Shown here: in pieces, positions 132-58,227 of the stretch
Numbering within the stretch: position 1 is the stretch's first letter
How the letters are laid out: each line of letters starts with the position of its first letter
Translations under genes and position numbers: made by a program
The notes under the pieces: generated by a model
Databases searched by the model: none
Told to the model about the DNA's origin: nothing
The model's input: the letters and a program-made list of their open reading frames with translations, nothing else
Assembly: GCF_006345805.1 (NCBI RefSeq)
Contig: NC_043002.1
Span: forward strand, 68,634,001 to 68,698,000
Direction of reading: 5' to 3'
Source: Octopus sinensis
Lineage: Eukaryota
Length of the DNA stretch: 64,000 nt

Positions 132-439
132 GCACTTTCTTGTGTATTGTTATGCACATGATCTCCTAGTCTGTGAAAAAATTGTCCTGCATGAAACTGG
201 TCCACAGTGTAAAAAACAGGTTGGAGATTGCTGATGTACAAGGCCTCTGAGACAAGTAAGAAAGAAGGAGAACAGTATCTCCCAACCAGAGACCAGGTCA
301 GAATTTTGTAATAGAGTGGACACTGTTTAAAAATACTAAAGGCACCAGATGGTGGATTAAGTCTAGTAACCAAGTAGGCCAGGGTGGAATTTGAACTCAG
401 AATAAAAAGAACTAGTACAAAAACACAAGGTATCTGGTT

Positions 440-645
440 CAACATTCTCTACAGTTCCACCAATCCATTATCCTGGATTGATACCTTTATTTATTTATTT
501 ATTTTTCTTCATATTCAGCCTTGAAAGGATGAAAGGTGAAATTGAACTTGGTGAGATTTGAACTCAGAATGCAGAGAATCAGAACAAACAAATACCATGA
601 AACATTTATCTGATGCTCTGACGACTCAGCCAATATGCTGCTTAA
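440..645 (-). mobile_element. SINE family B (tRNA-like head, Deu/Nin-like core), degenerate
   Basis: Reverse complement of the ttctgagttcaaat...ctttcatcctt...ataaataaggtatc core seen in the 12362 and 61834 copies; boundaries approximate. Confidence 0.6.
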
Positions 646-2040
646 AATTTTATCGACTTCCAACTTTTCTACCACCACTATAACAACACAACCCAACAAA
701 TCTGAAGAGACACCCTACCAACATATTAAAAGGGATATAAAATAATGAATTAATAATAGTAATAATAATAATAAAGTGTACCTCTTACTTCATAATATAT
801 TCCACGCATGCACTCAAATGTATATGTGCATACATGTTAGTGTGTGATGTCATTATTGTAATTCTTTTTATTACACCTGTTGTTTTTGCATTTATAATAG
901 TAGACAAAACAGGTGTACAAGTTCGCTGTTCTCTAACTTCGTCACTCAAAAATCATGAGTCAGATATAAATAAAGAAAGGTACATTAAAAATCCCCTTTC
1001 CTCCCCTCTCACCAAGAAACACTGACAAATCACAAATGGCCAATGATTGTCAAGGGAAAATAATTTTATTGATTTATTTATTTATTTAATTCTATATCCA
1101 TCTCATACATTTATTAGAGGAAATGTTATATACAATTATCAAACAGGTGAACTAAAATTTGAACAACAGGTTGGCAGCTGGATAGTTTACCACTGTCCTG
1201 AGTCAGACAAACAAATACAGAATCACACAGATATATATGAGAAGAGAGACAGACAGACAGAGACAGAGTGTCAGCCATTAGAATGAGTTGACTCATAATG
1301 ATAATAATAATATAAACATTGCTGGCTAAGAGGAAATAGATGGATCAGTGGATTAGATGTACTGAAAGATATGCAATAAAACTTATAAATATTTGTCTAT
1401 TTTATCCTTGTTTAGTCAGAAGGAGTTCAAAAGTGGGGGAGAAAAAAAAACAGTTTCAGTTCAGCATCTAGCTGAGGTTTAATTTAATTTAATCCATTAT
1501 CATGTGTCATAGGTAATCTCAAATAAATACTTGAGCAAAATTAAACTGTCAAATAATTCAGGATGATCCACAAGCTCAAAGCTTCCATCTGGCATAAAGC
1601 TTTGCTATATTTATTTCTGTACCTTTTTTTCCCTTGCTTGCATAGGTCAAATAGAATTTGTTGAGATAAATTTCCTATGGTTGGATGCCTTTCCTGTCAT
1701 CAACCCTCACATGTTTCAAAGCAAGGTAATATTGTGGCAGTAGAGTCCTCAGATATTTTCTCTTTACGGTCCTATCTTAAGCAACCATCATTACACTTGT
1801 CTGTCAGACTTCCAAGCATGAGCAACTGAGACTGCGGATATCGTGCAACTACCTTGTTCTTGGCCTACCCCACCACCACCCGGGTCTCCTGCTGGTTGAC
1901 TTTGCTTGTAGATTCCATTTTGCAATCCTTTCCTGTGGCATTAGTTTGTGTAGATAAAGTTATTTTAAAATGTATTGGCTAAGTAATCAACTCCAGCTTA
2001 TCGTCTCTACTGTACAGCATTCTCATGCATTTAAAAGTAA

Positions 2041-2756
2041 TCTATATATATATAAAACTGAGAATGTGTGTCTGTCTGTGTGAATCCCTAAAACTTGAGA
2101 ACTACACAAGCAATTTCATTCAAATTTTACACATGCCTTACTTAGGGTCCATGTAGTGTCATGGGCAAAAAATTTTTCAACTTCTTGCCTAGGGCGAGCC
2201 CACAGCAATATCATATCTTCTCCACTATTTCAATATTACGTGTTAAAAGTGAAACAGAAACATCTCTCTATTGTAATGTCAGATGCTTTCACTTTAATAC
2301 TGAAACTGTTAAAGTGAAACTATTATATAAGAGGGATGAACCATTAAGAGTGGACATCCATTTTGCTAGAAGATCCGCTATGGTCTTACCACTAAGAAAG
2401 GAATGGTAAGTCCATAGTGGATCTTCTTCTAGCATAATGGATGTCCACTTACAGGACACCACCCTTATATGTATGTAATATAATTTTTTCTGAAACTTTA
2501 GACTTTTCAATATGCTACACCACTGGTTTTAAATTGATATAAATCAATTTAATATTCAAATTTTCACCCTTATTATTTTAAATTTAACACCCACTACACT
2601 CTTGGAGTGGTTGGCATTAGGAAGGGCATCCAGCTGTAGAAACTCTGCCAGATCAAGACTGGAGCCTGGTGCAGCCATCTGGTTGCCAGCCCTCAGTCAA
2701 AACCGTCCAACCCATGCTAGCATGGAAAACGGACGTTAAATGATGATGATGATGAT

Positions 2757-2791
<35 letters not shown>

Positions 2792-3823
2792 GTATATATA
2801 TACATGTATATGTATACATGTATATATATATAGCTGTATATGTATAGATGTATATGTATACATGTATATGTGTAGATGTATATATAGAGAGATGTACATG
2901 TATTATGTACACATATATACATGCATACATTTATACACCCATACACACACATACATAGGTGCAGGTGTGGCTGTGTGCTAACAAACTTCGTTCCAAGACA
3001 CATGGTCCTGGGTTCAGTCCCACTGTATGGTGACTTGGCATGTGTCTTCTGCTATAGCCTCAGACCAACCAAAGCCTTCTCAGTGGATTTTGTAGACAGA
3101 AACTGAAAGAAATCAATCGTATATATATGTATATATGTAAGTCTATGTGTGTGTCTTGGTGTTTCTCCCTCATCACTGCTTCACAACTGCTGTTCGTTTA
3201 TTTACAGCCTCAAAACTTACTGGTTTCACAAGAAGAAACTGATACAATAAGTACCAGGCTTATCAAAATAATAAAAAAAAAACACTAGGCAGTCTGGTTG
3301 TGCCTGTCACCTGGATGGTGAGGAATACTACAATGGGAGTGATAACGACTAGGGTGCTGTAGCTGACTGCTTATTGTGATCATTCATCTTTTGGTCTCCT
3401 GTAGCTTTGCTCTCTTTTACAAACCCAGTGAATATATATTTCCTATTTCAAAGAAATTCAAACAATAGATATAGGACCCGAGTTAAAAAGATTCTCAACA
3501 ATTCAACTTCTCTGCTTGACATTAAGACGCCCACTCCCAATAGGGGCCTAACTCTCACATTTTAGAGCTCCATGACCTCCATTTTTCAGGAGCAAAATCC
3601 TTTTAACAGGTTCTATAAGACTGGAATTTTGGAATGTGCGCATAAAAATCAGTAGTATGGGATACATATGGCACGATTACAATTTTTTTAGGGTGTGTAA
3701 AGAGGGAAATATCCCTCATCTGCAATTTTGATGATATTCGAAACATAGGTATTCCAGTTCATTACAGAAAAGTCTAATTCTTCAATTGCATGTAACACGG
3801 GGAACGCCGGGTAACTCTGCTAG
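2041..3823 (+). mobile_element. Non-autonomous Helitron carrying nested SINE/RTE-tail fragments
   Basis: Starts TCTATATATATATAAAACTG right after A2040 and ends ...gggaacgccgggtaactctgCTAG before T3824, with no TSD. Same termini as the 58326 element. Inserts at ~2599-2755 and ~2955-3125. Confidence 0.75.
2349..2449. repeat. ~100-nt inverted repeat (hairpin) inside the Helitron
   Basis: agtggacatccattttgctagaagatccgctatggtcttacca / 12-nt loop / tggtaagtccatagtggatcttcttctagcataatggatgtccact; 3 mismatches (one G-U) and a 3-nt bulge. Confidence 0.9.
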
Positions 3824-9986: not shown

Positions 9987-10060
9987 GAACAACAAACAAG
10001 ATGAGGACAAATATCCGTCAAATGTAAATAATGTACACAATTCCTCATTTCTTAAATATA
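9987..10060 (+). repeat. Partial copy of the hammerhead-bearing repeat at 60655-60825 (ribozyme part missing)
   Basis: aacaacaaacaagatgaggacaaatatccgtcaaatgtaaataatgtacacaattcctcatttcttaaatata is the reverse complement of 60655-60738. Confidence 0.75.
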
Positions 10061-10119
10061 GAACTGTATAAGTTACTTTGTTGTAAAGCTAATTTTTGTA
10101 AGTGGGTTCTAACAAAAAT

Positions 10120-10430
10120 TAATCAGAATTTCTGGCAAAGAGTTTCCAGTTGTTTGATCAACTGAACAACCACACTTATTGAATCAGTATGTAAGTGGCT
10201 GAGTATCACAAAGACACGTGTCCCCTTAATGTAATTCTCAAGTAGAATCAGGGTGACACAGGGTGATAAGGCTGAATCTTTGAATTACAAGTATAATCCA
10301 TTTGATAGACTTTGCCAGTTTCCATGTAACTGGTGTCACTCAAAAGATTAGAAAATGACACTTGCTTGAGATTGAACTAGAGACCTTGTGATTGCAAAGC
10401 AAAATTCTTAACTATTCAGCTGTGCAACAC
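10120..10430 (-). mobile_element. SINE family C (tRNA head), degenerate
   Basis: Reverse-complement similarity to the 39950 and 42800 copies; boundaries approximate. Confidence 0.5.
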
Positions 10431-10622
10431 ATACAGTTGGAATGTACAAACACCTAAATGACTCCAGATACATTAGTAATACTATTTTAATAAAAACTTA
10501 GAGGATAAAAAAAAAAAACAGCACTGATCCTGATAGAATTTGATCTCAAGACAAAGCATGATGAATTGAATTAAATTCTATAATGTGTTGAATCAATCAC
10601 CAAACATGTACTGATTTCGTAC

Positions 10623-20734: not shown

Positions 20735-21080
20735 CGCCACCTTACTGGCACTTGTGCTGGTGACACATGAAAAAGCATTCGAGCGAGGTCATTGTCAGTG
20801 CTGCGGGACTGGCTCCTGTGCAGGTGGCACATAAAAAGCACCATTTGAGCATGGTCGCTGCCAGTACCGCCTGACTGGCCCTCGTGCCGGTGGCACGTAA
20901 AAGCACCCACTACGCTCTCGGAGTGGTTGGCGTTAGGAATAGCATCCAGCTGTAGAAACTCTGCCAGTTCAAGATTGGAGCCTGGTGCAGCCATCTGGTT
21001 CGCCAGTCCTTAGTCAAATCGTCCAACCCATGCTAGCATGGAAAACGGACGTTAAACAATAATGATGATGATGATGATGA
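20735..21080 (+). mobile_element. RTE-tail element with internal ~55-bp subrepeats
   Basis: gtgccggtggcacgtaaaagcaccc...ggagtggttggcgttagg...gatgatgatg. Confidence 0.8.
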
Positions 21081-23539: not shown

Positions 23540-24560
23540 TCTTCTTCATTAAATGTCTGTTTTCCATGCAGGCATGAAAAGGATGTTTTGACAGGAACAG
23601 GCAAGTCAGAAGTTTACACTGAGCTCTGCTGTCTGTTTTGGTATGGTTTCTATGGTTAGATGCCCTTCCTAATGCCAACCACTTTACAGAGTACTTAGGT
23701 GCTTTTTAAGTGGCCTCATCATCAGTGAAATCACCAAGTAACTTGCAGAACAAGATCATCCTCAACTGGGAAGAGTAGTGTTGAGGGACAGAAAAGTGTC
23801 TTGCATTAGAAGATGGAGCAGAGAGAGAAGAGAGAAAGATGGTGAAGATGTGACAGAGAGCGAGTAGGGGCCATACACCTAACTTAAAGGGTGATATATT
23901 TAGTGAAATAAAGTGGGGATTGGAGAGGTTTGGTAGGTGGCTGACTTCACAAGATTTTGAAAGGAGAGTGGGAGCTAGAGGTAGGGAAATGGAAGGGGTT
24001 TGATAGGGGTATATTGTGTGCAGATAGGTAGGTGAGCACATGAGGGAGAATAGAGGGAAGTGAGAGGAAACAGCAGTGGAGAGCACAGGTTGGTTGTGGG
24101 AGAGGGAAGGGATCATAGATATGGATTGTTTTTTGCTGGGCAGGTTTTCTCAAGCACGGCAATATTGTCAGTTGTCTTGATCATTTGTTATCTCCTCTCT
24201 GAGGCTCAACATCTGAACTTTGTTTCTGACCACTTCCTCCCAAATCATCCTGGGTCTTCCTCTTCCACAGTTTCCCTCTGCATTTAGACATCAGCATTTC
24301 TTTATGCAACTGTTCTCATCCATACACAACACATAACTATACAAGCACAGTCTTCTCTCTTACACATTACAACTAATGCCTCTCATACTCAATTTCTCTG
24401 TCAATACATTTACACATTGCTGTAGATGCACACTGGCATTGCACATACAGTAGAGCATGCTGGCTACATTTCTTTCAAGCCTTTGCATGTCACAGCTTAT
24501 ATTTTGCTCATATGTATCTGTCCATACACAGGTATCATACAGTGTACAATACAAATAAAT
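23540..24560 (-). mobile_element. RTE LINE 3' fragment
   Basis: LYDTCV...DMQRLERNVASMLYCMCNASVH...LTEKL plus the conserved RTE tail. Confidence 0.8.
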
Positions 24561-24949
24561 AACCTGCTGGATTTAGTAAATGTGAGTATTATATTATCTA
24601 TAATACCCACACAGTTTATTCACACCATGGTCTTCACATAAAAAGATGTTTACCGTACAAATTCATGAATGATTGGGCCTTCATTTTAAATTGAAAAAAC
24701 TATTGGTATATAAGTGTTGGACTGTGAATAGTTTGCTTGCACCATTTAAAGAACACTATCATGAAACACAGGTTTAGAAATTGTGGTAAGAATATATTAT
24801 CCAAAAGACCCTCACCATTCCTCCTCTGCATGTTATCATCTCATATAACGTTGTTGCTTGCCTGTGATATGGAGTCAGATGATTGACCATCTGATACAAG
24901 GATGTGGTGTCTGTATCTTGTTGCCCATAGTCATTCATTCATTTTAGTG

Positions 24950-25190
24950 GCATGTAAAAAGCACCATCCGATCGTGGCCGTTTGCCAGCCTCGTCTGGCA
25001 CCTGTGCCGGTGGCACGTAAAAAGCACCCACTACACTCATGGAGTGGTTGGCGTTAGGAAGGGCATCCAGCCGTAGAAACATTGCCAGATCAGACTGGAG
25101 CCTGGTGCAGCCTTCTGGCTTCCCAGACCCTAGTTGCACTGTCCAGCTCATGCCAGCATGGAAAGCGGACGCTAAACGATGATGATGATG
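24950..25190 (+). mobile_element. RTE-tail element
   Basis: gtggcacgtaaaaagcacccactac...ggacgctaaacgatgatgatg. Confidence 0.8.
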
Positions 25191-25464
25191 ATTGCAATAC
25201 CCCTTACATATATGAACTGGTTTGTCTGCTACACAAACATTCTACATTACATAAAAAGAAATGTTAACAGCAGTAATTTTATGACCAGCACACAACTATT
25301 TTACAGAGGTGCAGTTTCCTCTCTGTGTTTCTTCTAGCATTAATACAATGGCCTCTATCTATTTGAACTAGTAGTTTGATTCCTCCTTTATCCATTTCTC
25401 CTTCTTGAGTAACTATTTCACCTCCTAGGGAACACACAAAATATTCACTATTATTTTATCTTAC

Positions 25465-25538
25465 CTCTAAGGCAGCACTCAAAATGTCTTTCACAATCTT
25501 TCTCCCCACAATTGTAACTCTAAAAAATTCCTGATTTT
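25465..25538 (-). CDS. Candidate internal exon (NQEFFRVTIVGRKIVKDILSAALE)
   Basis: Strong donor GAG|GTAAGA; acceptor position ambiguous. Confidence 0.22.
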
Positions 25539-25741
25539 CTTGCAATTATCAATCTGTAATTTAAATTGAACATCAACTTCATCAGTCTTCTCAGTCTAGG
25601 ACAGCCTGTTATGATATGTGTTGCCCCTTTTCTCTTAAATTTAAAATAAAAATTGCCGTGACTAAACACTTGCACCGTCAGGTTGTCAATAGGGACCATA
25701 AACAAGCTTACAGTTTTATGTACTGTATTATATTATATTAT

Positions 25742-26071
25742 GAAGGCGCATGGCTCAGTGGTTAGAGCGTCGAGCTTACGATCGTGAGGTTGTGAGCTCG
25801 AATCCCGGACCGGGCTGCGTGTTGTGTTCTTGAGCAAGGCACTTTATTTCACGTTGCTCCAGCTCACTCAGCTGTAGAAATGAGTTGCGACGTCACAGGT
25901 GCCAAGCTGTATCGACCTTTGTCTTTCCCTTGGATAACACTGGTGGCGTGGAGAGGGGAGGCTGGTATGCATGGGCGACTGCTGGTCTTCCTTGCCCGGA
26001 CTTGTGTCTAGGAGGGTAACTTTCTAGGTGCAATCCCATGGTCATTCATGACCGAAGGGGGTCTTTACCCT
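25742..26071 (+). mobile_element. Full-length, CpG-intact tRNA-derived SINE (family C)
   Basis: A-box tggctcagtgg, B-box-like gagctcgaatccc, body tgttcttgagcaaggcact; 11-bp TSD tattatattat at 25731-25741 and 26072-26082. Confidence 0.85.
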
Positions 26072-26127
26072 TATTATATTATTGATTGTTTCTATAGAGT
26101 TAGCGACAAAAAACCCCAACTCCTTAC

Positions 26128-26193
26128 GATATCTTCTAAATAGCTGTATCAATGATTGAAGTTCCCTGTTACTCCTTTTAATGACTGGGGTTG
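26128..26193 (-). CDS. Candidate 66-nt symmetric exon (TPVIKRSNRELQSLIQLFRRY)
   Basis: tattttcttctcAG acceptor and ATC|GTAAGG donor; length divisible by 3; only phase 1 is open. Confidence 0.35.
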
Positions 26194-26813
26194 CTGAGAA
26201 GAAAATAGCTATCTTACAGCTACATTTTAAAGTTTTCTTTACAGTAACAGAGTGGAAAACATTAATTTGTAGTAACATTTTGGTCAGAATTTACATGGTG
26301 CTAAATGAAAACTAATCCTTAATTATTTGTGCGGGAAAATAAATATTATTTAAAGGAAACACCAAAATTCCTGACACCAAAGAAATATCTTCAGATGGTT
26401 TTGGAGGTGAGGGTGGAATATGTATTTATAGTTTGCACTTGTGTAAGGGAAGTGAAGAGAAATAATACACTAAACCCAGATTTTCTCTCGAAATATTACC
26501 ATCTTCAAGTTATTTATAGAGTAAAAAGATATAAAAAGGAAATATTACGTTCTATATTATGTCTATGAACTCGACAAACATTTAAAAATGATTTTCACTT
26601 TTAATTTAATCTTCGAGACTTTTCGATTTACTATTTCATTCTAGCTTTTTTAAAATAAATTATCAACATTACTTTCTGGTTAAGGATTTTTCTAGTAAAA
26701 ATCTAATTGATAAATACTATTTTGATCTTATAAGGCGCTATTTAAAGTTTCATGGTATTTGTTGGTTGATACCTAATTGATATTGTCATTCGCACATTGG
26801 GTATTACACTGAC

Positions 26814-26895
26814 CCAAAGAACCAAGAACTATTTCCTGCCAGGTGACAGATGCTGCGACTTGCTTTTGCATAGTTTCGATGACGATGCCATCCAT
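26814..26895 (-). CDS. Candidate first coding exon (MDGIVIETMQKQVAASVTWQEIVLGSL)
   Basis: aatATGG start context; donor G|GTCAGT in phase 1; CpG-retaining unique DNA ~1.2 kb upstream of FRAT. Confidence 0.22.
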
Positions 26896-27799
26896 ATTCG
26901 TTAGAAAGTTGCTCACTAACGCCTTGTCCCAGTAACCCCATACAAGAGGCAACAACAATAAACATTATATACATCCCATGTGATTGATAACACTGGAATG
27001 CGTTGCAATCCTAAAATGGTTCCATCGTAGGGCGGTTATACAAAAATATAACGAAAGTATATATCGTGTTCTCATTAGCACGCCGGTTTTTAGCTTCATA
27101 CCCCTGTATCTTCTTTATATTTCTCTGAACGGAATTCAGTTGACCGTTAGTTTATGTTTATCCTGTCTATTCCAAATGTGACCGCTTCTCAGTAGACAAT
27201 GGCGACTTATATTGCAAAGCAACATGTGTTGTTTGTTTAAACATGCAAACAACTGCAAAGTACAATGAATATAACCAGCAATACAAGCTACTTCCATCAA
27301 GATACTACTTATATAATTATGACAGCTTTCGTTAATTAGTTTTGTTTATTATTAACATCACCAAGAGCATTAAGAAGTCTCACTCGAGATGGAACCGGCA
27401 TAATATATATAAACATAAACAGCTGCCACCGGTATACATTATTACAGATTATTAAACCGATTGTTTTGAAACTGCAATAAATCACCATATCAGTACAAAA
27501 ATGTTTATTTGTTAGCAAAACAACAATAAAACACTATCGAAATATAATAACCCGCTTTAGGGAAGGGGGTTATTAAATATGATATTACTGTTTACTGAAT
27601 AAAGTAGCTAATATATTACGCCATTACTGAGGCTTTGTTTACAAAATAAAAATTATTTATTACAAAATGAATATTAATAAAGTGTGAAGATAATGTTTAC
27701 TAAGAATGTTTCAGTTTATATTAATATGAAATTAAAACGAAAAATTTCGAATAACATGAAAGTTATTTGAAAAAAACATTGGGTTTATTTTCTTGACGC

Positions 27800-28053
27800 G
27801 TAGTAACATGTCTATGTCAACAGACATGCCATTCAAAAGTGAAGCGTTCAAATTTTTAGCCAGTTCAAAGGGAAGTAAGTAACGAGGATTTTTAATTGGC
27901 CTATACGTGACGTTATTGGTCGTGGTTAATTGTAGCTAGTCGTGTATTGGCTGTTCGCTTGAACAAGAACTTTTATCAATGTGAAATATAAATATACACA
28001 GAAATAGGCCACTACTCCTTAGTTACGCTGTCGGAGACTACATCGTAGCAAAT
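27800..28053 (+). promoter_or_regulatory. Proximal promoter of the FRAT-like gene
   Basis: Three inverted CCAAT boxes (ATTGG at 27895, 27915, 27946), CRE-like TGACGT at 27908, TCF/LEF-type TTCAAAGG at 27864-27871; CpG-rich and free of TEs. Confidence 0.55.
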
Positions 28054-28890
28054 ATGCCGATCAGGTTAGAAAGCATGGGAGCTGTTAATGTTAGCCCTTC
28101 GAATCAAACGGATTTAAAAGATATCGAATGGTTAACTCGTGGCATCGAGGAAACATTACAGTTACAACAACATCAACATAACCATTGCGAAACCGGTCAC
28201 CATTTGAAGTCGGTTTCTCCTTCAGCAAGCAGCATGCCAAGTCGCCATCCTACTTTTAGTGGCGGTAATCAGGCACATGTGCCCATCGACCACGATAACA
28301 TGGTAATACCAACTAAACCTTGCAAAGCTGCCTCAGCCGGCACCTGGTTGCCTTACGTTTTACCGTCCGTTCGAGACAGACATCTAAACCGAGTGAAAAG
28401 TAATTGGCGGCACGGCAACTTCAATAATAATGACAACAATAACAAATGGGTTGTGAAGCGGCTAAACCACAGGAACGTGGTCAACAAGAGGAGGAAAAAT
28501 TATGTGTATATCGAAGATGTCCGGACTAGAAACGGTTGTAATACAGACTACAGGCATCACCAAAAATTGCTTTCTACACAGACATTAATTCAGGAAGCTG
28601 TGCGTCGACTGTATGGATTACATAGAAGCACTGGTTCTACAACCATTAATAATGATACAAACAATAACAACAATCCTAACAGTAGCACCATAATGACTAC
28701 TACTAATAATAATAGTAATAGTAGTAATAATAATAATAATGGTACTACTGTAGGACACAATGGCATGGTCTCTGTCGGGACCGGCAGCTGCTGTACATTA
28801 CAGCAAGAACGTCAACAACAACAACTATTACTATTTCAGCAAAACAGTTTTAGGGACAAATGTGAATTATTTTGTGATGTAACCGTATGA
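28054..28890 (+). CDS. FRAT: FRAT/GBP-family GSK3-binding protein, intronless, 278 aa
   Basis: MPxR start; DIEWLTRGIEETLQLQ matches FRAT1 EVDRLVAQIGETLQLD; PY motif; W-x-x-G; DYRHHQKLLSTQTLIQEAVRRL matches DPHRLLQQLVLSGNLIKEAVRRL; same motif order; single exon as in vertebrate FRATs; poly-N and poly-Q inserts. Confidence 0.9.
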   Translation: MPIRLESMGAVNVSPSNQTDLKDIEWLTRGIEETLQLQQHQHNHCETGHHLKSVSPSASSMPSRHPTFSGGNQAHVPIDHDNMVIPTKPCKAASAGTWLPYVLPSVRDRHLNRVKSNWRHGNFNNNDNNNKWVVKRLNHRNVVNKRRKNYVYIEDVRTRNGCNTDYRHHQKLLSTQTLIQEAVRRLYGLHRSTGSTTINNDTNNNNNPNSSTIMTTTNNNSNSSNNNNNGTTVGHNGMVSVGTGSCCTLQQERQQQQLLLFQQNSFRDKCELFCDVTV

Positions 28891-29048
28891 TTTATTTTTG
28901 ACTTAACATTTTATGTACATTATTTCAAATGTGTGGATTTTAACTCACACACATACACACACACCACACAAAAACATACACACAAACATCACTCATGCAC
29001 TCACTTCATACATATGTACATGCATTTTTCACACATCACATATATATT

Positions 29049-37794: not shown

Positions 37795-38225
37795 TTCTGA
37801 CCTTCGAACGTTGGGCTTCACAGAGGCAATGACAAAAGACTGAGACCTCTGGAGATAAGATGTGACTGCGAAGACCTGACAAACGGAGTTCATGGCTGTA
37901 TCTTACATCAACTTCACACAACCAGCCCCAGCCCATTCAAAGTACCTTGGATTGTGGGGCAACCTGCTGTGCTTGAGGAGACCTATTGAGTCAAGAACAT
38001 CAAAATAAAAATCAAATGGAATTGTAGTTGTGATACCTGTGCCAGTGGCACGTAAAAAGCACCCACTACTCTCACGGAGTGGTTGGCATTAGGAAGGACA
38101 TCCAGCTGTAGAAACACTGCCAGATCAGACTGGAGCTTGGTGCAGCCTCCTGGCTTCCCAGACCCCGGTCGAACCGTCCAACCCATGCTAGCATGGAAAA
38201 CAGACGTTAAACCATGATGATGATG
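37795..38225 (+). mobile_element. RTE LINE 3' end with (GAT)n tail
   Basis: gaccttcgaacgttgggcttcacagaggcaatgac (ORF end DLRTLGFTEAM) followed by the conserved tail. Confidence 0.8.
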
Positions 38226-38227
38226 AA

Positions 38228-45754: not shown

Positions 45755-45786
<32 letters not shown>

Positions 45787-46010
45787 GTTTAATGTCCGTT
45801 TTCCCCGCTAGCACGGGTTGGGCGGTTTGACCGGGGTCTGGGAAGCCAGAGGCCGCTCCAGGCTCCAGTCTGATCTGGCAGAGTTTCTACGGCTGGATGC
45901 CCTTCCTAACGCCAACCACTCCGCGAGTGGAGTGGGTGCTTTTTACGTGCCACCTGCACAGGGGCCGGGGGGTCCGGCATCGGTCACGATCGGTTCGGTA
46001 TTGGTGGTGG
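45495..46010 (-). mobile_element. Two RTE-tail elements separated by a TA/CA microsatellite
   Basis: catcatcat..tttaa..tcc...ctggatgcccttcctaacgccaaccactcc present twice. Confidence 0.75.
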
Positions 46011-48222: not shown

Positions 48223-48507
48223 TTAATGATTAATCCAGCACTGCATGAGTGACAGGAGCTGTGAGTGTTGGTTAGAATGTGCTACTGCTATAAATTATAC
48301 CCTTTGCATGTGGATTTTCATTTTAAGTATACTTGTTTCATATCATTAGTAGGTTGCGGGTGGTGGGCTCTGTGCCACCTGTGATAAAGTATGTGAAATG
48401 TGTTGTTTTGTGGAATGAAATGGTTGGGCACAGCCTATTGGGATGCTGATGGTTTGATGCGGTTGACTGGACATTCAACCTGTTTTGATTTATTTTTGGC
48501 ATTGGAG

Positions 48508-48509
<2 letters not shown>

Positions 48510-48586
<77 letters not shown>

Positions 48587-48960
48587 AACACACACACACA
48601 GACAAACACAGACACACAAACACACACACACAAACACAAACACACAAACACAAACACACACACACACACACACACACAAAGACTCAAACACAAACACAGA
48701 CACAAACACACACAAACATACACACACATGCACACTTGCATGTGTATGTAGAAACATATACATACATACATACAGAAAGAATGAGAGTGGGAGAGAGGAG
48801 AGAGGAGAGAGAGAGAGAGAAAAAGGGTAGAGAGGGGAAAGTAGGAAAGAGACATGGCGAGAAGATGGGAAAAAAGGGGGAAAGACAGAGAAGGAGAGAG
48901 AGAGAGAGAGGAGAGGGAGAGAAAGAGCGGGGGGGGGAAAAGAAGGAGGGAGAGAGGCAT
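48510..48960. repeat. Long (CA)n then GA-rich simple repeat
   Basis: Direct inspection; explains the 160-230-aa VC/HT-rich ORFs. Confidence 0.95.
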
Positions 48961-49329
48961 TATGATTATAATTGAACACAATCGACATAAACACTTTCCT
49001 CATACAAATGTGCTCAAACACATAAACAGAGAGCGGGGGGGGGAGTGGAAAGGGAGGGAGGAAGGGAACAAGAGAAATATTAAAAAAGAACCGTCAAAAT
49101 GTGTGCTGTCAAATAAGTCAACGATGAATCAGTGACACCAAATACAGGACGCAAAGTGGCGATGCCAAAACGTCACATACGTGCGTGCGGTTTCATATTC
49201 CATGTTGTTTATTATGGTTTGTTGCAAAGTGATCTGAGTTGGGGTACAAGCAAAACAGGAGTCACTCGTGGTAGTTCGTTTGTCTTCCTGTTGGTCAAAT
49301 GCAATGGCTGCAAGTGCTCTGTAGTCTCT

Positions 49330-49479
49330 AATTGATTGCTAAACCTTTGCAAGGCTGAAGGAATCGATGAAGAAATGAAAGGAAACCTGTGAGCCGGAGA
49401 TTGTTAACATGTTGATGGCTGAATCTGGGATAATCAGTTGAATGGCCTTGCATGCATTCCAGGATATTTCTGTGTGTGT

Positions 49480-49519
<40 letters not shown>

Positions 49520-50960
49520 ATATGTGCATGCACATGTGTGTGTATGCAAGTGTGTGTTGGCATGCATGTGAATGTGTTTAAGTGAGTGTGTGTGTGTGCA
49601 TGAACGCAAGTCTGTGCATGTGTATGTGTGCATGCATCTGAGTATGCATGCATGTGAGTGTACATGCATGTGAGTGTGCATTGTATGCATGCATATGAGT
49701 GTATGCATGTGTATGTGTGCATGCATCTATGTCTATGTGTGTGTGTGTATGTTAAAAGTACATTGGAATACTTTTAACATGTATTAGAGGGTGCTGCTGC
49801 AACACACATACACATACAAGTATTACATACATACACACTCTTCTCTTTCTCACACACATGTATACATACACGTGCATATGCACACACATATACACACACA
49901 TGCTCATACACTCGAGCACACATACACATGCACACACTCACACTCTCTCTTACATGCATACACACACACATAATCGCTCACACACATACACACACACAAA
50001 CTCTCTCTCCTCATGCACACACACAGCGGCTTATATTACAACACAGACTGCAACACATACACACACATGTACACACAGACTCACACAACACAGCACACAC
50101 ACCAATACAACACAGCACACACACCAATACAACACAGCACACACACATGTACACACACACACATGTGCACACACACATATGTACATACAGACACACACAC
50201 CAATACAACACAGCACACACACAACACAGCACTCATGCACACAACACAGCAAACATACACACACCCACACATGTGCATGCACACACACACACACACATAC
50301 AGACACATGCATGTTTACACACACACACACTCACACTCTCTCTTACATGCACACACATATACACACACAGACTCTCTCTCCTCATGCACACATACAGAGG
50401 ATTATATTGCAACACAAGCTGCAACACATACACACACATGTACACGCACACACACACAACACAGCACACACACCAATACAACACAGCACATGCACACAAC
50501 ACAGCACTCACATGCACAACACAGCACACTTACACACACCCACACGTGCATGCACACACACACACATACTTGCATGTATACACACAAACACACTCACACA
50601 CACTCAGAAATATCCTTCAATTCCTACAAGGCCATTCAACTGATTATCCCTAATTCAATCATTAACAAGCCACAACTTCTAGCTTACAGGTTCTCTCTCT
50701 CTCTTTTTCTCCATCCATTGCTACTACAACAGACTATATACACATTTCTCATAATCCATTTCTAATTTGCATTCTCTTCAGAGCCGCGAGCAGTTATCTG
50801 TCTACCCTTGCCATCTTCTAAACCAGCATGAAACATTTCCACCGGACATTCTTCCTGTAAAATGATACATACTGGAATCCTCTCCCTTCCTCGCACTTTT
50901 CCTGCAAATATTCGTTTACAGACGTTCAAGCGATGTAGTTACTGCATCAATTGATCCAGT
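49330..50960. repeat. Old imperfect inverted duplication of a (CA-rich tract + CR1 3' fragment) unit
   Basis: 49380-49470 is the reverse complement of 50600-50700 (roughly three-quarters identical by eye); central 12-bp hairpin at 49749-49780; CR1 C-terminus continues to ~50960. Confidence 0.7.
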
Positions 50961-53114: not shown

Positions 53115-53830
53115 CCTTCTTGGGAAGCACGACCTTCGAACTTTAGATCTCACCAAGGAATGACTAGAGACCGAGACCTATGGAAGTATGCTGTGAATGA
53201 GAAGACCCGGTAAGACTAGTGAGAAGATAACCTGTGGCCTACATACCTTTCCTTCTTGGGATACAAAACTCCACTTGTGAAGACCCGTTGAGACGAGTGA
53301 AAATCAGAGTCAAAATCAAAATCAAACCAAATCAAATCAGATATCAGAAAGCAGAACCAAAATCAAAGTCGATCAACATCAATGGAAATTGCAGCTGTGG
53401 TTAAGCGAACCATCCGATCGTGGCCGTTGCCAGCGCCGCCCCGACTGGCCTCCGTGCCGGTGGCACGTAAAAGCACCATCCGTTCGTATCCGTTGCCAGC
53501 CTTGCCTGGCCCCCGTGCCAGTGGCATGTAGCACCATCCATTCATGGCTGTTGCCAAACTCGCCTGGCCCCCGTGCCGGTGGCACGTAAAAGCACCAACC
53601 AATCGTGGCCGTTTGCCAGCTCCGTCTGGCACCTGTGCGGGTGGCACGTAAAAAGCACCCACTACACTCACAGAGTGGTTGGCGTTAGGAAGGGCATCCA
53701 GCCGTAGAAACACTGCCAGATCAGACTGGACCTGATGCAGCCTTCTGTCTTCACAGACCCCAGTTGAACCGTCCAACCCATGCTAGCATGGAAAGCAGAC
53801 GCTAACTGATGATGATGATGATGATGATGA
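53115..53830 (+). mobile_element. RTE LINE 3' end with four ~60-bp tandem subrepeats and (GAT)n tail
   Basis: gcacgaccttcgaac...gagacctatggaagtatgctgtg ORF end; acca.cc..tcgt.gccgtt...gtggcac unit repeated 4 times at ~53405-53660. Confidence 0.8.
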
Positions 53831-54114: not shown

Positions 54115-54480
54115 TCATCATCATCATCATCATCATCATTGTTTAACGTCCGTTTTCCATGCTGGCATGGGTTTGATGGTTCGACTGGGGTCTGGGAAGC
54201 CAGGAGGCTGCACCAGGCTTCAATCTAATCTGGCAGTGTTTCTACAGCTGGATGCCCTTCCTAATGCCAGCCACTCCGAGAGCGAAGTGGGTGCTTTTTA
54301 CATCCCGTTGGTACAGGGGCCAGAGGGGGGCTGGTATCATCCATGTTTGGATGGTGCTTTTATGTGCCACCAGCACGGGAGCCAGTCAAGGCGGCGCTGG
54401 CATCGGCCACATTCAGAGGGTGGTTTTTACATGCTACCGGCACAGGGAGCCGGACAGGCAGTGCTGGCATCAGCCACAAC
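54115..54480 (-). mobile_element. RTE-tail element
   Basis: Reverse-orientation conserved tail with subrepeats. Confidence 0.75.

Positions 54481-58013: not shown

Positions 58014-58227
<214 letters not shown>

Follow-up and report, generated by a model that had tools for sequence, protein, structure and literature searches.

A single-exon Octopus sinensis gene encodes a probable divergent molluscan orthologue of the vertebrate GSK3-binding proteins FRAT and GBP

Do molluscs possess a counterpart of FRAT/GBP, the GSK3-binding proteins known from vertebrates? The question is raised by a 64-kb stretch of Octopus sinensis DNA (contig NC_043002.1, positions 68,634,001 to 68,698,000; the whole stretch is referred to here as the window), in which an initial sequence-only reading had described a plus-strand open reading frame (ORF) of 278 amino acids (aa), had noted in it four motifs arranged as in vertebrate FRAT, and had assigned its product to that family. 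FRAT and Axin compete for binding to GSK3, and Dishevelled can recruit FRAT (PMC3529405, PMC6974163); FRAT also promotes the exclusion of GSK3 from the nucleus (PMC9122323), and it was described by specialists in 2020 as “not present in invertebrates” (PMC6974163). We consider it probable that the octopus ORF and vertebrate FRAT/GBP are orthologues, the mollusc version being divergent, and the comparisons reported below suggest that the FRAT family is probably far older than has been believed.

The ORF is a real gene under purifying selection. Re-reading the sequence returned the same ATG-to-TGA frame that had first been listed; it is the largest ORF of the window, and at 35% G+C only ~4e-4 chance ORFs of 278 codons are predicted for a window of this size. 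Codon-level comparisons gave ratios of nonsynonymous to synonymous substitution (dN/dS) of 0.12-0.26 overall: 0.157 between the window and a second octopus, 0.253 between the window and Argonauta, and 0.118 within a more distant cephalopod lineage, with minima in an N-terminal box (0.088) and in a C-terminal block resembling FRATtide, the GSK3-binding peptide of FRAT1 (0.165). Synonymous divergence (dS) was saturated among the compared lineages, and the ORF was intact in all species examined. In-frame stops lie 6-72 nucleotides (nt) before the conserved start in contigs L001 (from ENA), L002 (Argonauta), L003 (the scallop Mizuhopecten yessoensis), L004 (the second octopus) and L006 (the distant cephalopod lineage), which indicates that translation truly begins at the conserved MPIRLE. 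The initial description of a single exon was borne out for the coding sequence (CDS), which is uninterrupted in the window, in Argonauta (768 nt), in L001 (804 nt), in scallop (528 nt) and in Logan contigs, and is thus intronless in four mollusc lineages (octopus, argonaut, the third cephalopod lineage and scallop).

Over the ~190 nt that precede the ATG, conservation between octopus and argonaut exceeds that of the CDS, and we infer that the putative CCAAT and TATA elements found there (Table 1) form a core promoter abutting the ORF. The short distance from the putative TATA box to the ATG would imply a short 5' untranslated region (UTR) with no space for a 5' intron, and a promoter-like block abutting the ORF would likewise point to an intronless gene. 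The alternative that the frame is fortuitous, or belongs to a pseudogene, could appeal to the lack of any match to the window's exact protein in a collection of 15 billion sequences, and to the fact that the mollusc relatives which carry names (Argonauta and scallop) are called “hypothetical protein” only. Set beside an ORF length improbable by chance, the purifying selection seen among lineages whose dS is saturated, a conserved promoter block and intact ORFs, this alternative is highly improbable.

Relatives of the octopus protein were sought in two ways, by word-indexed lookup among 5.8 billion proteins and by running HMMER exhaustively over 1.84 billion representatives, and both returned cephalopod-like sequences only. 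These are a protein of the second octopus, recovered from two sequencing runs (P0001, 94% identical), a “hypothetical protein” of Argonauta hians (P0002, 66% identity), and three proteins of the more distant cephalopod lineage (P0003, P0004 and P0125, 37-39% identity), which is presumably squid or cuttlefish. In this distant lineage gene callers place the start differently, with products of 290 aa and 281 aa, and in some of its contigs an in-frame upstream ATG (L006 2232-2258) prepends MKKKRAFAD to MPIRLE. A further observation concerns the C-terminus, where a Q-rich predicted helix followed by FRDKCELFCDVTV (aa 254-278, 28813-28887) is conserved between octopus and argonaut and missing in the other cephalopod lineage, scallop and vertebrates; as far as the compared sequences go, this tail is an octopod-specific module.

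The assignment to FRAT/GBP is carried by a series of short blocks that occur in a common order in the ORF and in the vertebrate proteins, namely MPxRxE, [VIL][DE]xLxxx[IL]xExLx[LV], a Trp-containing basic stretch, and a helix-turn-helix ending LI[KQ]EAVRR[LI]. The ORF has MPIR (aa 1-4), the box IEWLTRGIEETLQL, PY (aa 100-101) and LIQEAVRRL in succession, and mammalian FRAT1 has, in the same order, MPCR (1-4), VDRLVAQIGETLQL (40-53), APY (126-128) and LIKEAVRRL (212-220). At the N-terminus M, P, R and E occupy equal positions in MPIRLE and MPCR[RK]E, a match too short for a formal score, and the scallop sequence begins MRLPTE. Within the Trp-containing stretch, K131, W132 and V133 are unvarying among cephalopods, and the Trp of KWVVKR and that of RRGWLR fall in the same MAFFT column. 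In an unsupervised MAFFT alignment of 14 mollusc and vertebrate proteins all blocks came into register, with ten invariant columns (M1, P2, L27, L35, L178, I179, E181, A182, V183 and R185) and an almost invariant E33 in the box. Furthermore, the segments that are most constrained within cephalopods coincide exactly with those that match FRAT.

The C-terminal block is the counterpart of the best characterized part of FRAT. FRATtide comprises FRAT1 residues 188-226, of which 198-222 are ordered as two short helices, and FRAT1 L212, I213 and K214 hydrogen-bond GSK3 Tyr288 (PMC10676556, PMC10502273) together with a Glu that is disputed, being given as Glu290 (PMC10502273) or as Glu300 (PMC10676556). 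L212 and I213 are identical in the ORF (L178 and I179) and K214 is replaced by Q180, while L178-x3-A182-x2-R185-L186 is a perfect fit to L/FxxxL/AxxRL, the general GSK3-interaction motif that is also present in Axin, GSKIP and WWOX (PMC9794558). AlphaFold2 predicted helices only at aa 21-43 and 164-192, which cover the two FRAT-like blocks, and at aa 248-265 in the octopod-specific tail, with the remainder disordered; at a mean predicted local distance difference test (pLDDT) score of 46.8 the model is indicative only, and helix 164-192 itself has low confidence (pLDDT ~60). The N-terminal box is, in each family member, the sole match to PHI-x3-PHI-x3-PHI-x-PHI, and on this pattern match alone it can be put forward, as a hypothesis, as a candidate leucine-rich nuclear export signal.

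Table 1. Features of the FRAT/GBP-like locus and example repeat copies, in window coordinates
Feature	Position	Strand	Remarks
Complete single-exon CDS, FRAT/GBP-like protein	28054..28890	+	Longest ORF; cephalopod orthologues; dN/dS 0.16-0.25
N-terminal MPIRLE	28054..28071	+	Vertebrate FRAT/GBP MPCR[RK]E; invariant in all cephalopod sequences
N-terminal box IEWLTRGIEETLQL	28123..28164 (aa 24-37)	+	Counterpart of FRAT1 VDRLVAQIGETLQL (40-53)
LPYVLPSV	28348..28371 (aa 99-106)	+	Possible counterpart of vertebrate APY / SPYxIP; weak
KWVVKR	28444..28461 (aa 131-136)	+	Aligned to invariant vertebrate RRGWLR
FRATtide-equivalent segment, putative GSK3-binding helix-turn-helix	28540..28614 (aa 163-187)	+	Corresponds to FRAT1 197-221
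LIQEAVRRL, predicted core GSK3-interaction motif	28585..28611 (aa 178-186)	+	8/9 identical to FRAT1 LIKEAVRRL
In-frame stop TGA, closest 5' of start	27982..27984	+	72 nt before ATG
Three inverted CCAAT boxes, putative proximal promoter	ATTGG at 27895-27899, 27915-27919, 27946-27950	+	Invariant in window, L004 and L002
TATAAATA, putative TATA box	27987..27994	+	60 nt before ATG; invariant in three octopod sequences
SINE-like repeat, example copies	53579-53822, 38035-38226, 45772-45993, 54126-54370, 20824-21072, 2588-2757		

Likeness to FRAT/GBP extends to the general build of the proteins, since the mollusc and vertebrate members are of similar size (157-290 aa), mostly disordered and encoded by an intronless CDS; vertebrate FRAT genes are intronless. 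The differences are nevertheless considerable. Overall identity with FRAT/GBP is just ~20-25%, the spacers between blocks are Asn/Ser/Thr-rich in the ORF whereas those of FRAT/GBP are Pro/Ala/Gly-rich, the acidic run that follows MPCRRE in FRAT is lacking, and the octopods carry an additional predicted helix, Q-rich and C-terminal (aa 248-265), that FRAT/GBP does not have.

The same collinear motifs are found in a 175-aa scallop protein, Mizuhopecten yessoensis KP79_PYT13355 (OWF40784.1; P0127), which reads VDLDALIGKLKENLTV ... RPSPYCIPRK ... IMILKQLLREQTLIQEAVRRIQ. It resembles the cephalopod proteins in having the four motifs in equal order, an identical QTLIQEAVRR and an uninterrupted CDS, but differs from them in its much shorter inter-block stretches, its divergent N-terminus and the lack of the Trp. 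At the positions of FRAT1 L202, L203, L206 and V207 the scallop protein has I, L, L and L, and the cephalopods have H, H, L and L; with its helix-1 hydrophobic residues retained, the scallop protein behaves as an intermediate, and its SPYCIP is also close to the SPYNIP of a teleost, the catfish. A second pectinid copy (P0129) was found as well. The claim, first made from the octopus locus, that the family is present in protostomes is strengthened by a scallop protein of the same architecture. A separate feature of the scallop locus is a multi-exon 110-aa “gene” (L003 3225-9994) lying upstream of the FRAT-like CDS (10001-10528), the stop codon of which is in frame and 6 nt before the FRAT-like ATG, where “which” is the upstream gene. 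The two may be a split gene model, the upstream part representing exons or an upstream ORF of one transcript, in which case introns may be present in the 5' UTR of the scallop gene despite its intronless CDS.

Targeted comparisons with vertebrate FRAT/GBP supported the relationship quantitatively. The vertebrate profile hidden Markov model (HMM) was built from 16 proteins, 15 of them mammalian and one a catfish GBP, and is mammal-heavy because the search seeded with human FRAT1 was saturated by mammals; the catfish protein (P0126) scores 74.5 bits in Pfam and has as a cluster mate [quoted passage not shown]. The scores of the window ORF, P0002, P0127 and P0003 were compared with those of 3000 composition-preserving shuffles, and HMM expectation values (E) were taken at Z=1. 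The window ORF scored 14.4 bits (E=1.2e-6), Argonauta P0002 16.6 bits (E=2.5e-7) and scallop P0127 16.7 bits (E=2.3e-7), each with 0/3000 shuffles reaching the score; P0129 gave the highest value (18.8 bits, E=5.3e-8), and the distant cephalopod proteins P0003 (6.0 bits, E=4.3e-4, 1/3000 shuffles) and P0004 (6.2 bits, E=3.6e-4) gave the lowest. When the HMM was split, both halves matched the window ORF in the correct order, the N block with E=2.3e-3 (2/3000 shuffles) and the C block with E=3.7e-6 (0/3000), and the N block was weaker elsewhere (E=0.04 in scallop, E=0.12 in the third cephalopod lineage).

Pairwise and alignment-to-alignment comparisons pointed to the same segments. BLASTP of the ORF against marmoset FRAT1 aligned aa 140-187 with 174-221, ungapped at an offset of 34 (E=3e-5 for the single pair). 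With hhalign, an alignment of the cephalopod proteins matched 15 mammalian FRATs at aa 21-40 (FRAT 36-55; P=7e-4 to 9e-4), and after addition of scallop at the C block (aa 131-190 against FRAT1 171-224; P=1.7e-4), an alignment which reaches the shared Trp, as well as at the box (P=7.8e-3). Taken together, the combined evidence amounts to <~0.01 after correction for the ~25,000 candidate families in Pfam, which is significant and not overwhelming.

Several results weigh against orthology. The family-profile search that the sequence-only reading had proposed as a check did not come out significant: the sole Pfam match of the ORF is GSK-3_bind (PF05350), in the FRATtide region (aa 146-188, profile 179-221 of 238), and its 12.3 bits (E=0.11) do not reach the gathering score of 25. 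The second octopus protein (P0001) equals this score, and P0002, P0003, P0004, P0125 and scallop P0127 gave no Pfam FRAT match. A phmmer search of PDB sequences with the ORF aligned aa 157-188 to residues 4-35 of FRATtide (1gng_X) at E=0.77, with unrelated proteins matching equally weakly (phospholipase D, E=0.25; NMD3, E=0.42). A profile of the cephalopod proteins did not find FRAT among PDB sequences, and against the 1.84 billion representatives at E<=1e-3 it returned cephalopods only, without vertebrate FRAT; in an exhaustive search of a library of that size a match of 15-25 bits is non-significant. The same cephalopod-only profile ranked catfish GBP and scallop P0127 directly after the cephalopods, at 24 bits apiece, yet this ranking is weak evidence because the candidates had been pre-selected by shared 5-mers such as EAVRR. 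Additionally, hhalign probabilities were only 23-50%, most of the signal comes from a single helix of ~20 residues, and FRAT1 L202 and L203 are His-His in cephalopods. Synteny lends no evidence either, as the window holds no recognisable neighbour gene (its 10 next-largest ORFs are without a Pfam match). Finally, of the four collinear motifs originally listed, MPIR, the box and LIQEAVRRL stand in order, but PY is weak: it takes the form LPY in octopods and SPYCIP in scallop, has support in scallop only (p=0.004-0.012), is absent in P0003 and P0004, and contributes no HMM score in cephalopods.

These results bear first on the possibility of a chance resemblance, under which the ORF would be a true cephalopod gene with some other function, its low-complexity product carrying coincidental motifs. 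A Pfam E of only 0.11 and a PDB search that gives unrelated proteins at similar strength speak for it. Chance is nonetheless disfavoured by the shuffle controls, in which none of the 3000 sequences attained the HMM score of the ORF, and by the finding that the matched segments are the most constrained ones within cephalopods; moreover, the same pattern recurs in the scallop protein, whose score against the vertebrates is the better one. We therefore regard a chance resemblance as quite unlikely. The Pfam gathering score is a working cut-off rather than a property of the biology, and we accordingly class the ORF as a probable divergent orthologue without certifying its membership of the family. 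The original FRAT/GBP identification thus holds in so far as it rests on several independent, collinear and individually modest matches and on the scallop protein, and falls short in that the Pfam score stays below threshold.

Convergence is the other explanation to be considered, namely that a disordered protein specific to molluscs evolved its own GSK3-binding amphipathic helix and came to look like FRAT without sharing its descent. The bulk of the statistical signal does lie in ~20 residues, neither exhaustive HMMER nor cephalopod-profile searches returned non-mollusc intermediates, and L/FxxxL/AxxRL helices occur in the unrelated proteins Axin, GSKIP and WWOX (PMC9794558), the last point being a further one against orthology. 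The GSK3-interaction domain of Axin and GSKIP likewise present amphipathic helices of the general motif to the same C-lobe groove of GSK3. However, they fill this groove with quite different sequences, so that the groove itself does not impose LI[KQ]EAVRRL, and past the motif they have other architectures and no sequence relationship to the ORF. The Axin version of the helix uses F388, L392 and L396 (PMC9794558), and the ORF helix matches the FRAT version and not the Axin version. Furthermore, MPxRxE and the box L-x3-I-x-E-x-L-x-L match too, independently and in order, and a shared Trp ~45 residues upstream, a similar length and an intronless CDS would all have to be accounted for. With the N-terminus, box and Trp matching in order and the Axin and GSKIP sequences differing, convergence is disfavoured, and we judge it an unlikely, if the less unlikely, of these two alternatives.

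Returning to orthology, the picture that we favour, with some reserve, is that FRAT/GBP is an ancient intronless bilaterian gene composed of a nuclear export signal-like box and a GSK3-docking helix-turn-helix, which was kept in cephalopods and bivalves and has disappeared from flies and nematodes or changed there too far to be recognised. Its product may at first have served to sequester GSK3 or shift its location in the early embryo, much as GBP does when the Xenopus axis forms. An origin before the protostome-deuterostome split and a loss in ecdysozoans would both follow only if the resemblance reflects homology and not convergence on a short helix.

A mechanism can be proposed along the same lines. 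The ORF would be an expressed intronless gene whose product is a mostly disordered, Asn-rich protein in which the conserved binding modules are short and few in number. On the model of FRAT, its helix-turn-helix near the C-terminus (aa 163-187, with LIQEAVRRL as core) would dock on the GSK3 C-lobe groove shared with Axin and compete with it, and GSK3 would thereby be sequestered from the destruction complex, which would favour stable beta-catenin. Near the N-terminus, the amphipathic helix at aa 24-37 (L-x3-I-x3-L-x-L) could serve as a partner-binding or nuclear-export element, and if the box does act in export the protein could also carry GSK3 out of the nucleus.

In this light the mollusc gene is a probable new, divergent member of a known family in an unexpected phylogenetic position. 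Our literature search found no paper tying FRAT to any mollusc, and unpublished automated annotations of FRAT-like invertebrate proteins may exist. If the mollusc proteins are true orthologues, the GSK3-sequestering branch of Wnt regulation is older than the protostome-deuterostome split, and its absence from fly and worm represents loss. The comparison further defines a minimal core of the family (MPxRxE, the L-x3-I-x-E-x-L-x-L box and LI[KQ]EAVRR[LI]), which indicates the parts of a vertebrate oncoprotein that matter. Mice can do without FRAT for canonical Wnt signalling, and GBP is required for Xenopus axis formation (PMC6974163); molluscs would offer a setting outside the vertebrates in which to ask about the purpose of FRAT, with an ancestral role testable in spiralian embryos. 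There is also a practical consequence for annotation, as the gene is apparently missing or unnamed in cephalopod annotations and this can be fixed.

The remaining observations concern the window around the gene, which is repeat-rich and gave no matches in an Rfam scan. A 2.3-kb segment (24023-26341) is missing from the orthologous contig L004 of the closely related octopus, in which positions 1-365 correspond to window 23678-24022 and 420-3035 to 26342-28970. It has the look of a lineage-specific indel situated ~1.7 kb upstream of the gene, and a 5' intron is the less likely reading, given that the flanks are just 80-90% identical and of genomic type. This segment contains one copy of a short interspersed element (SINE)-like repeat of ~250 bp, of which at least 15 copies, 70-91% identical, are spread over both strands of the window (examples in Table 1). 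Tandem arrays of 58-66-bp units with GGCAC(A/G)TAAAAGCACC occupy 20740-20907 and 53438-53659. A cluster of overlapping ORFs of 160-260 aa in several frames (48338-50765) was set aside as low-complexity artefacts without Pfam matches; these ORFs coincide with long (AC)n-type microsatellites (48512-48728 and 50041-50603) and strong negative GC skew. A perfect (CAA)37 microsatellite lies at 58117-58227.
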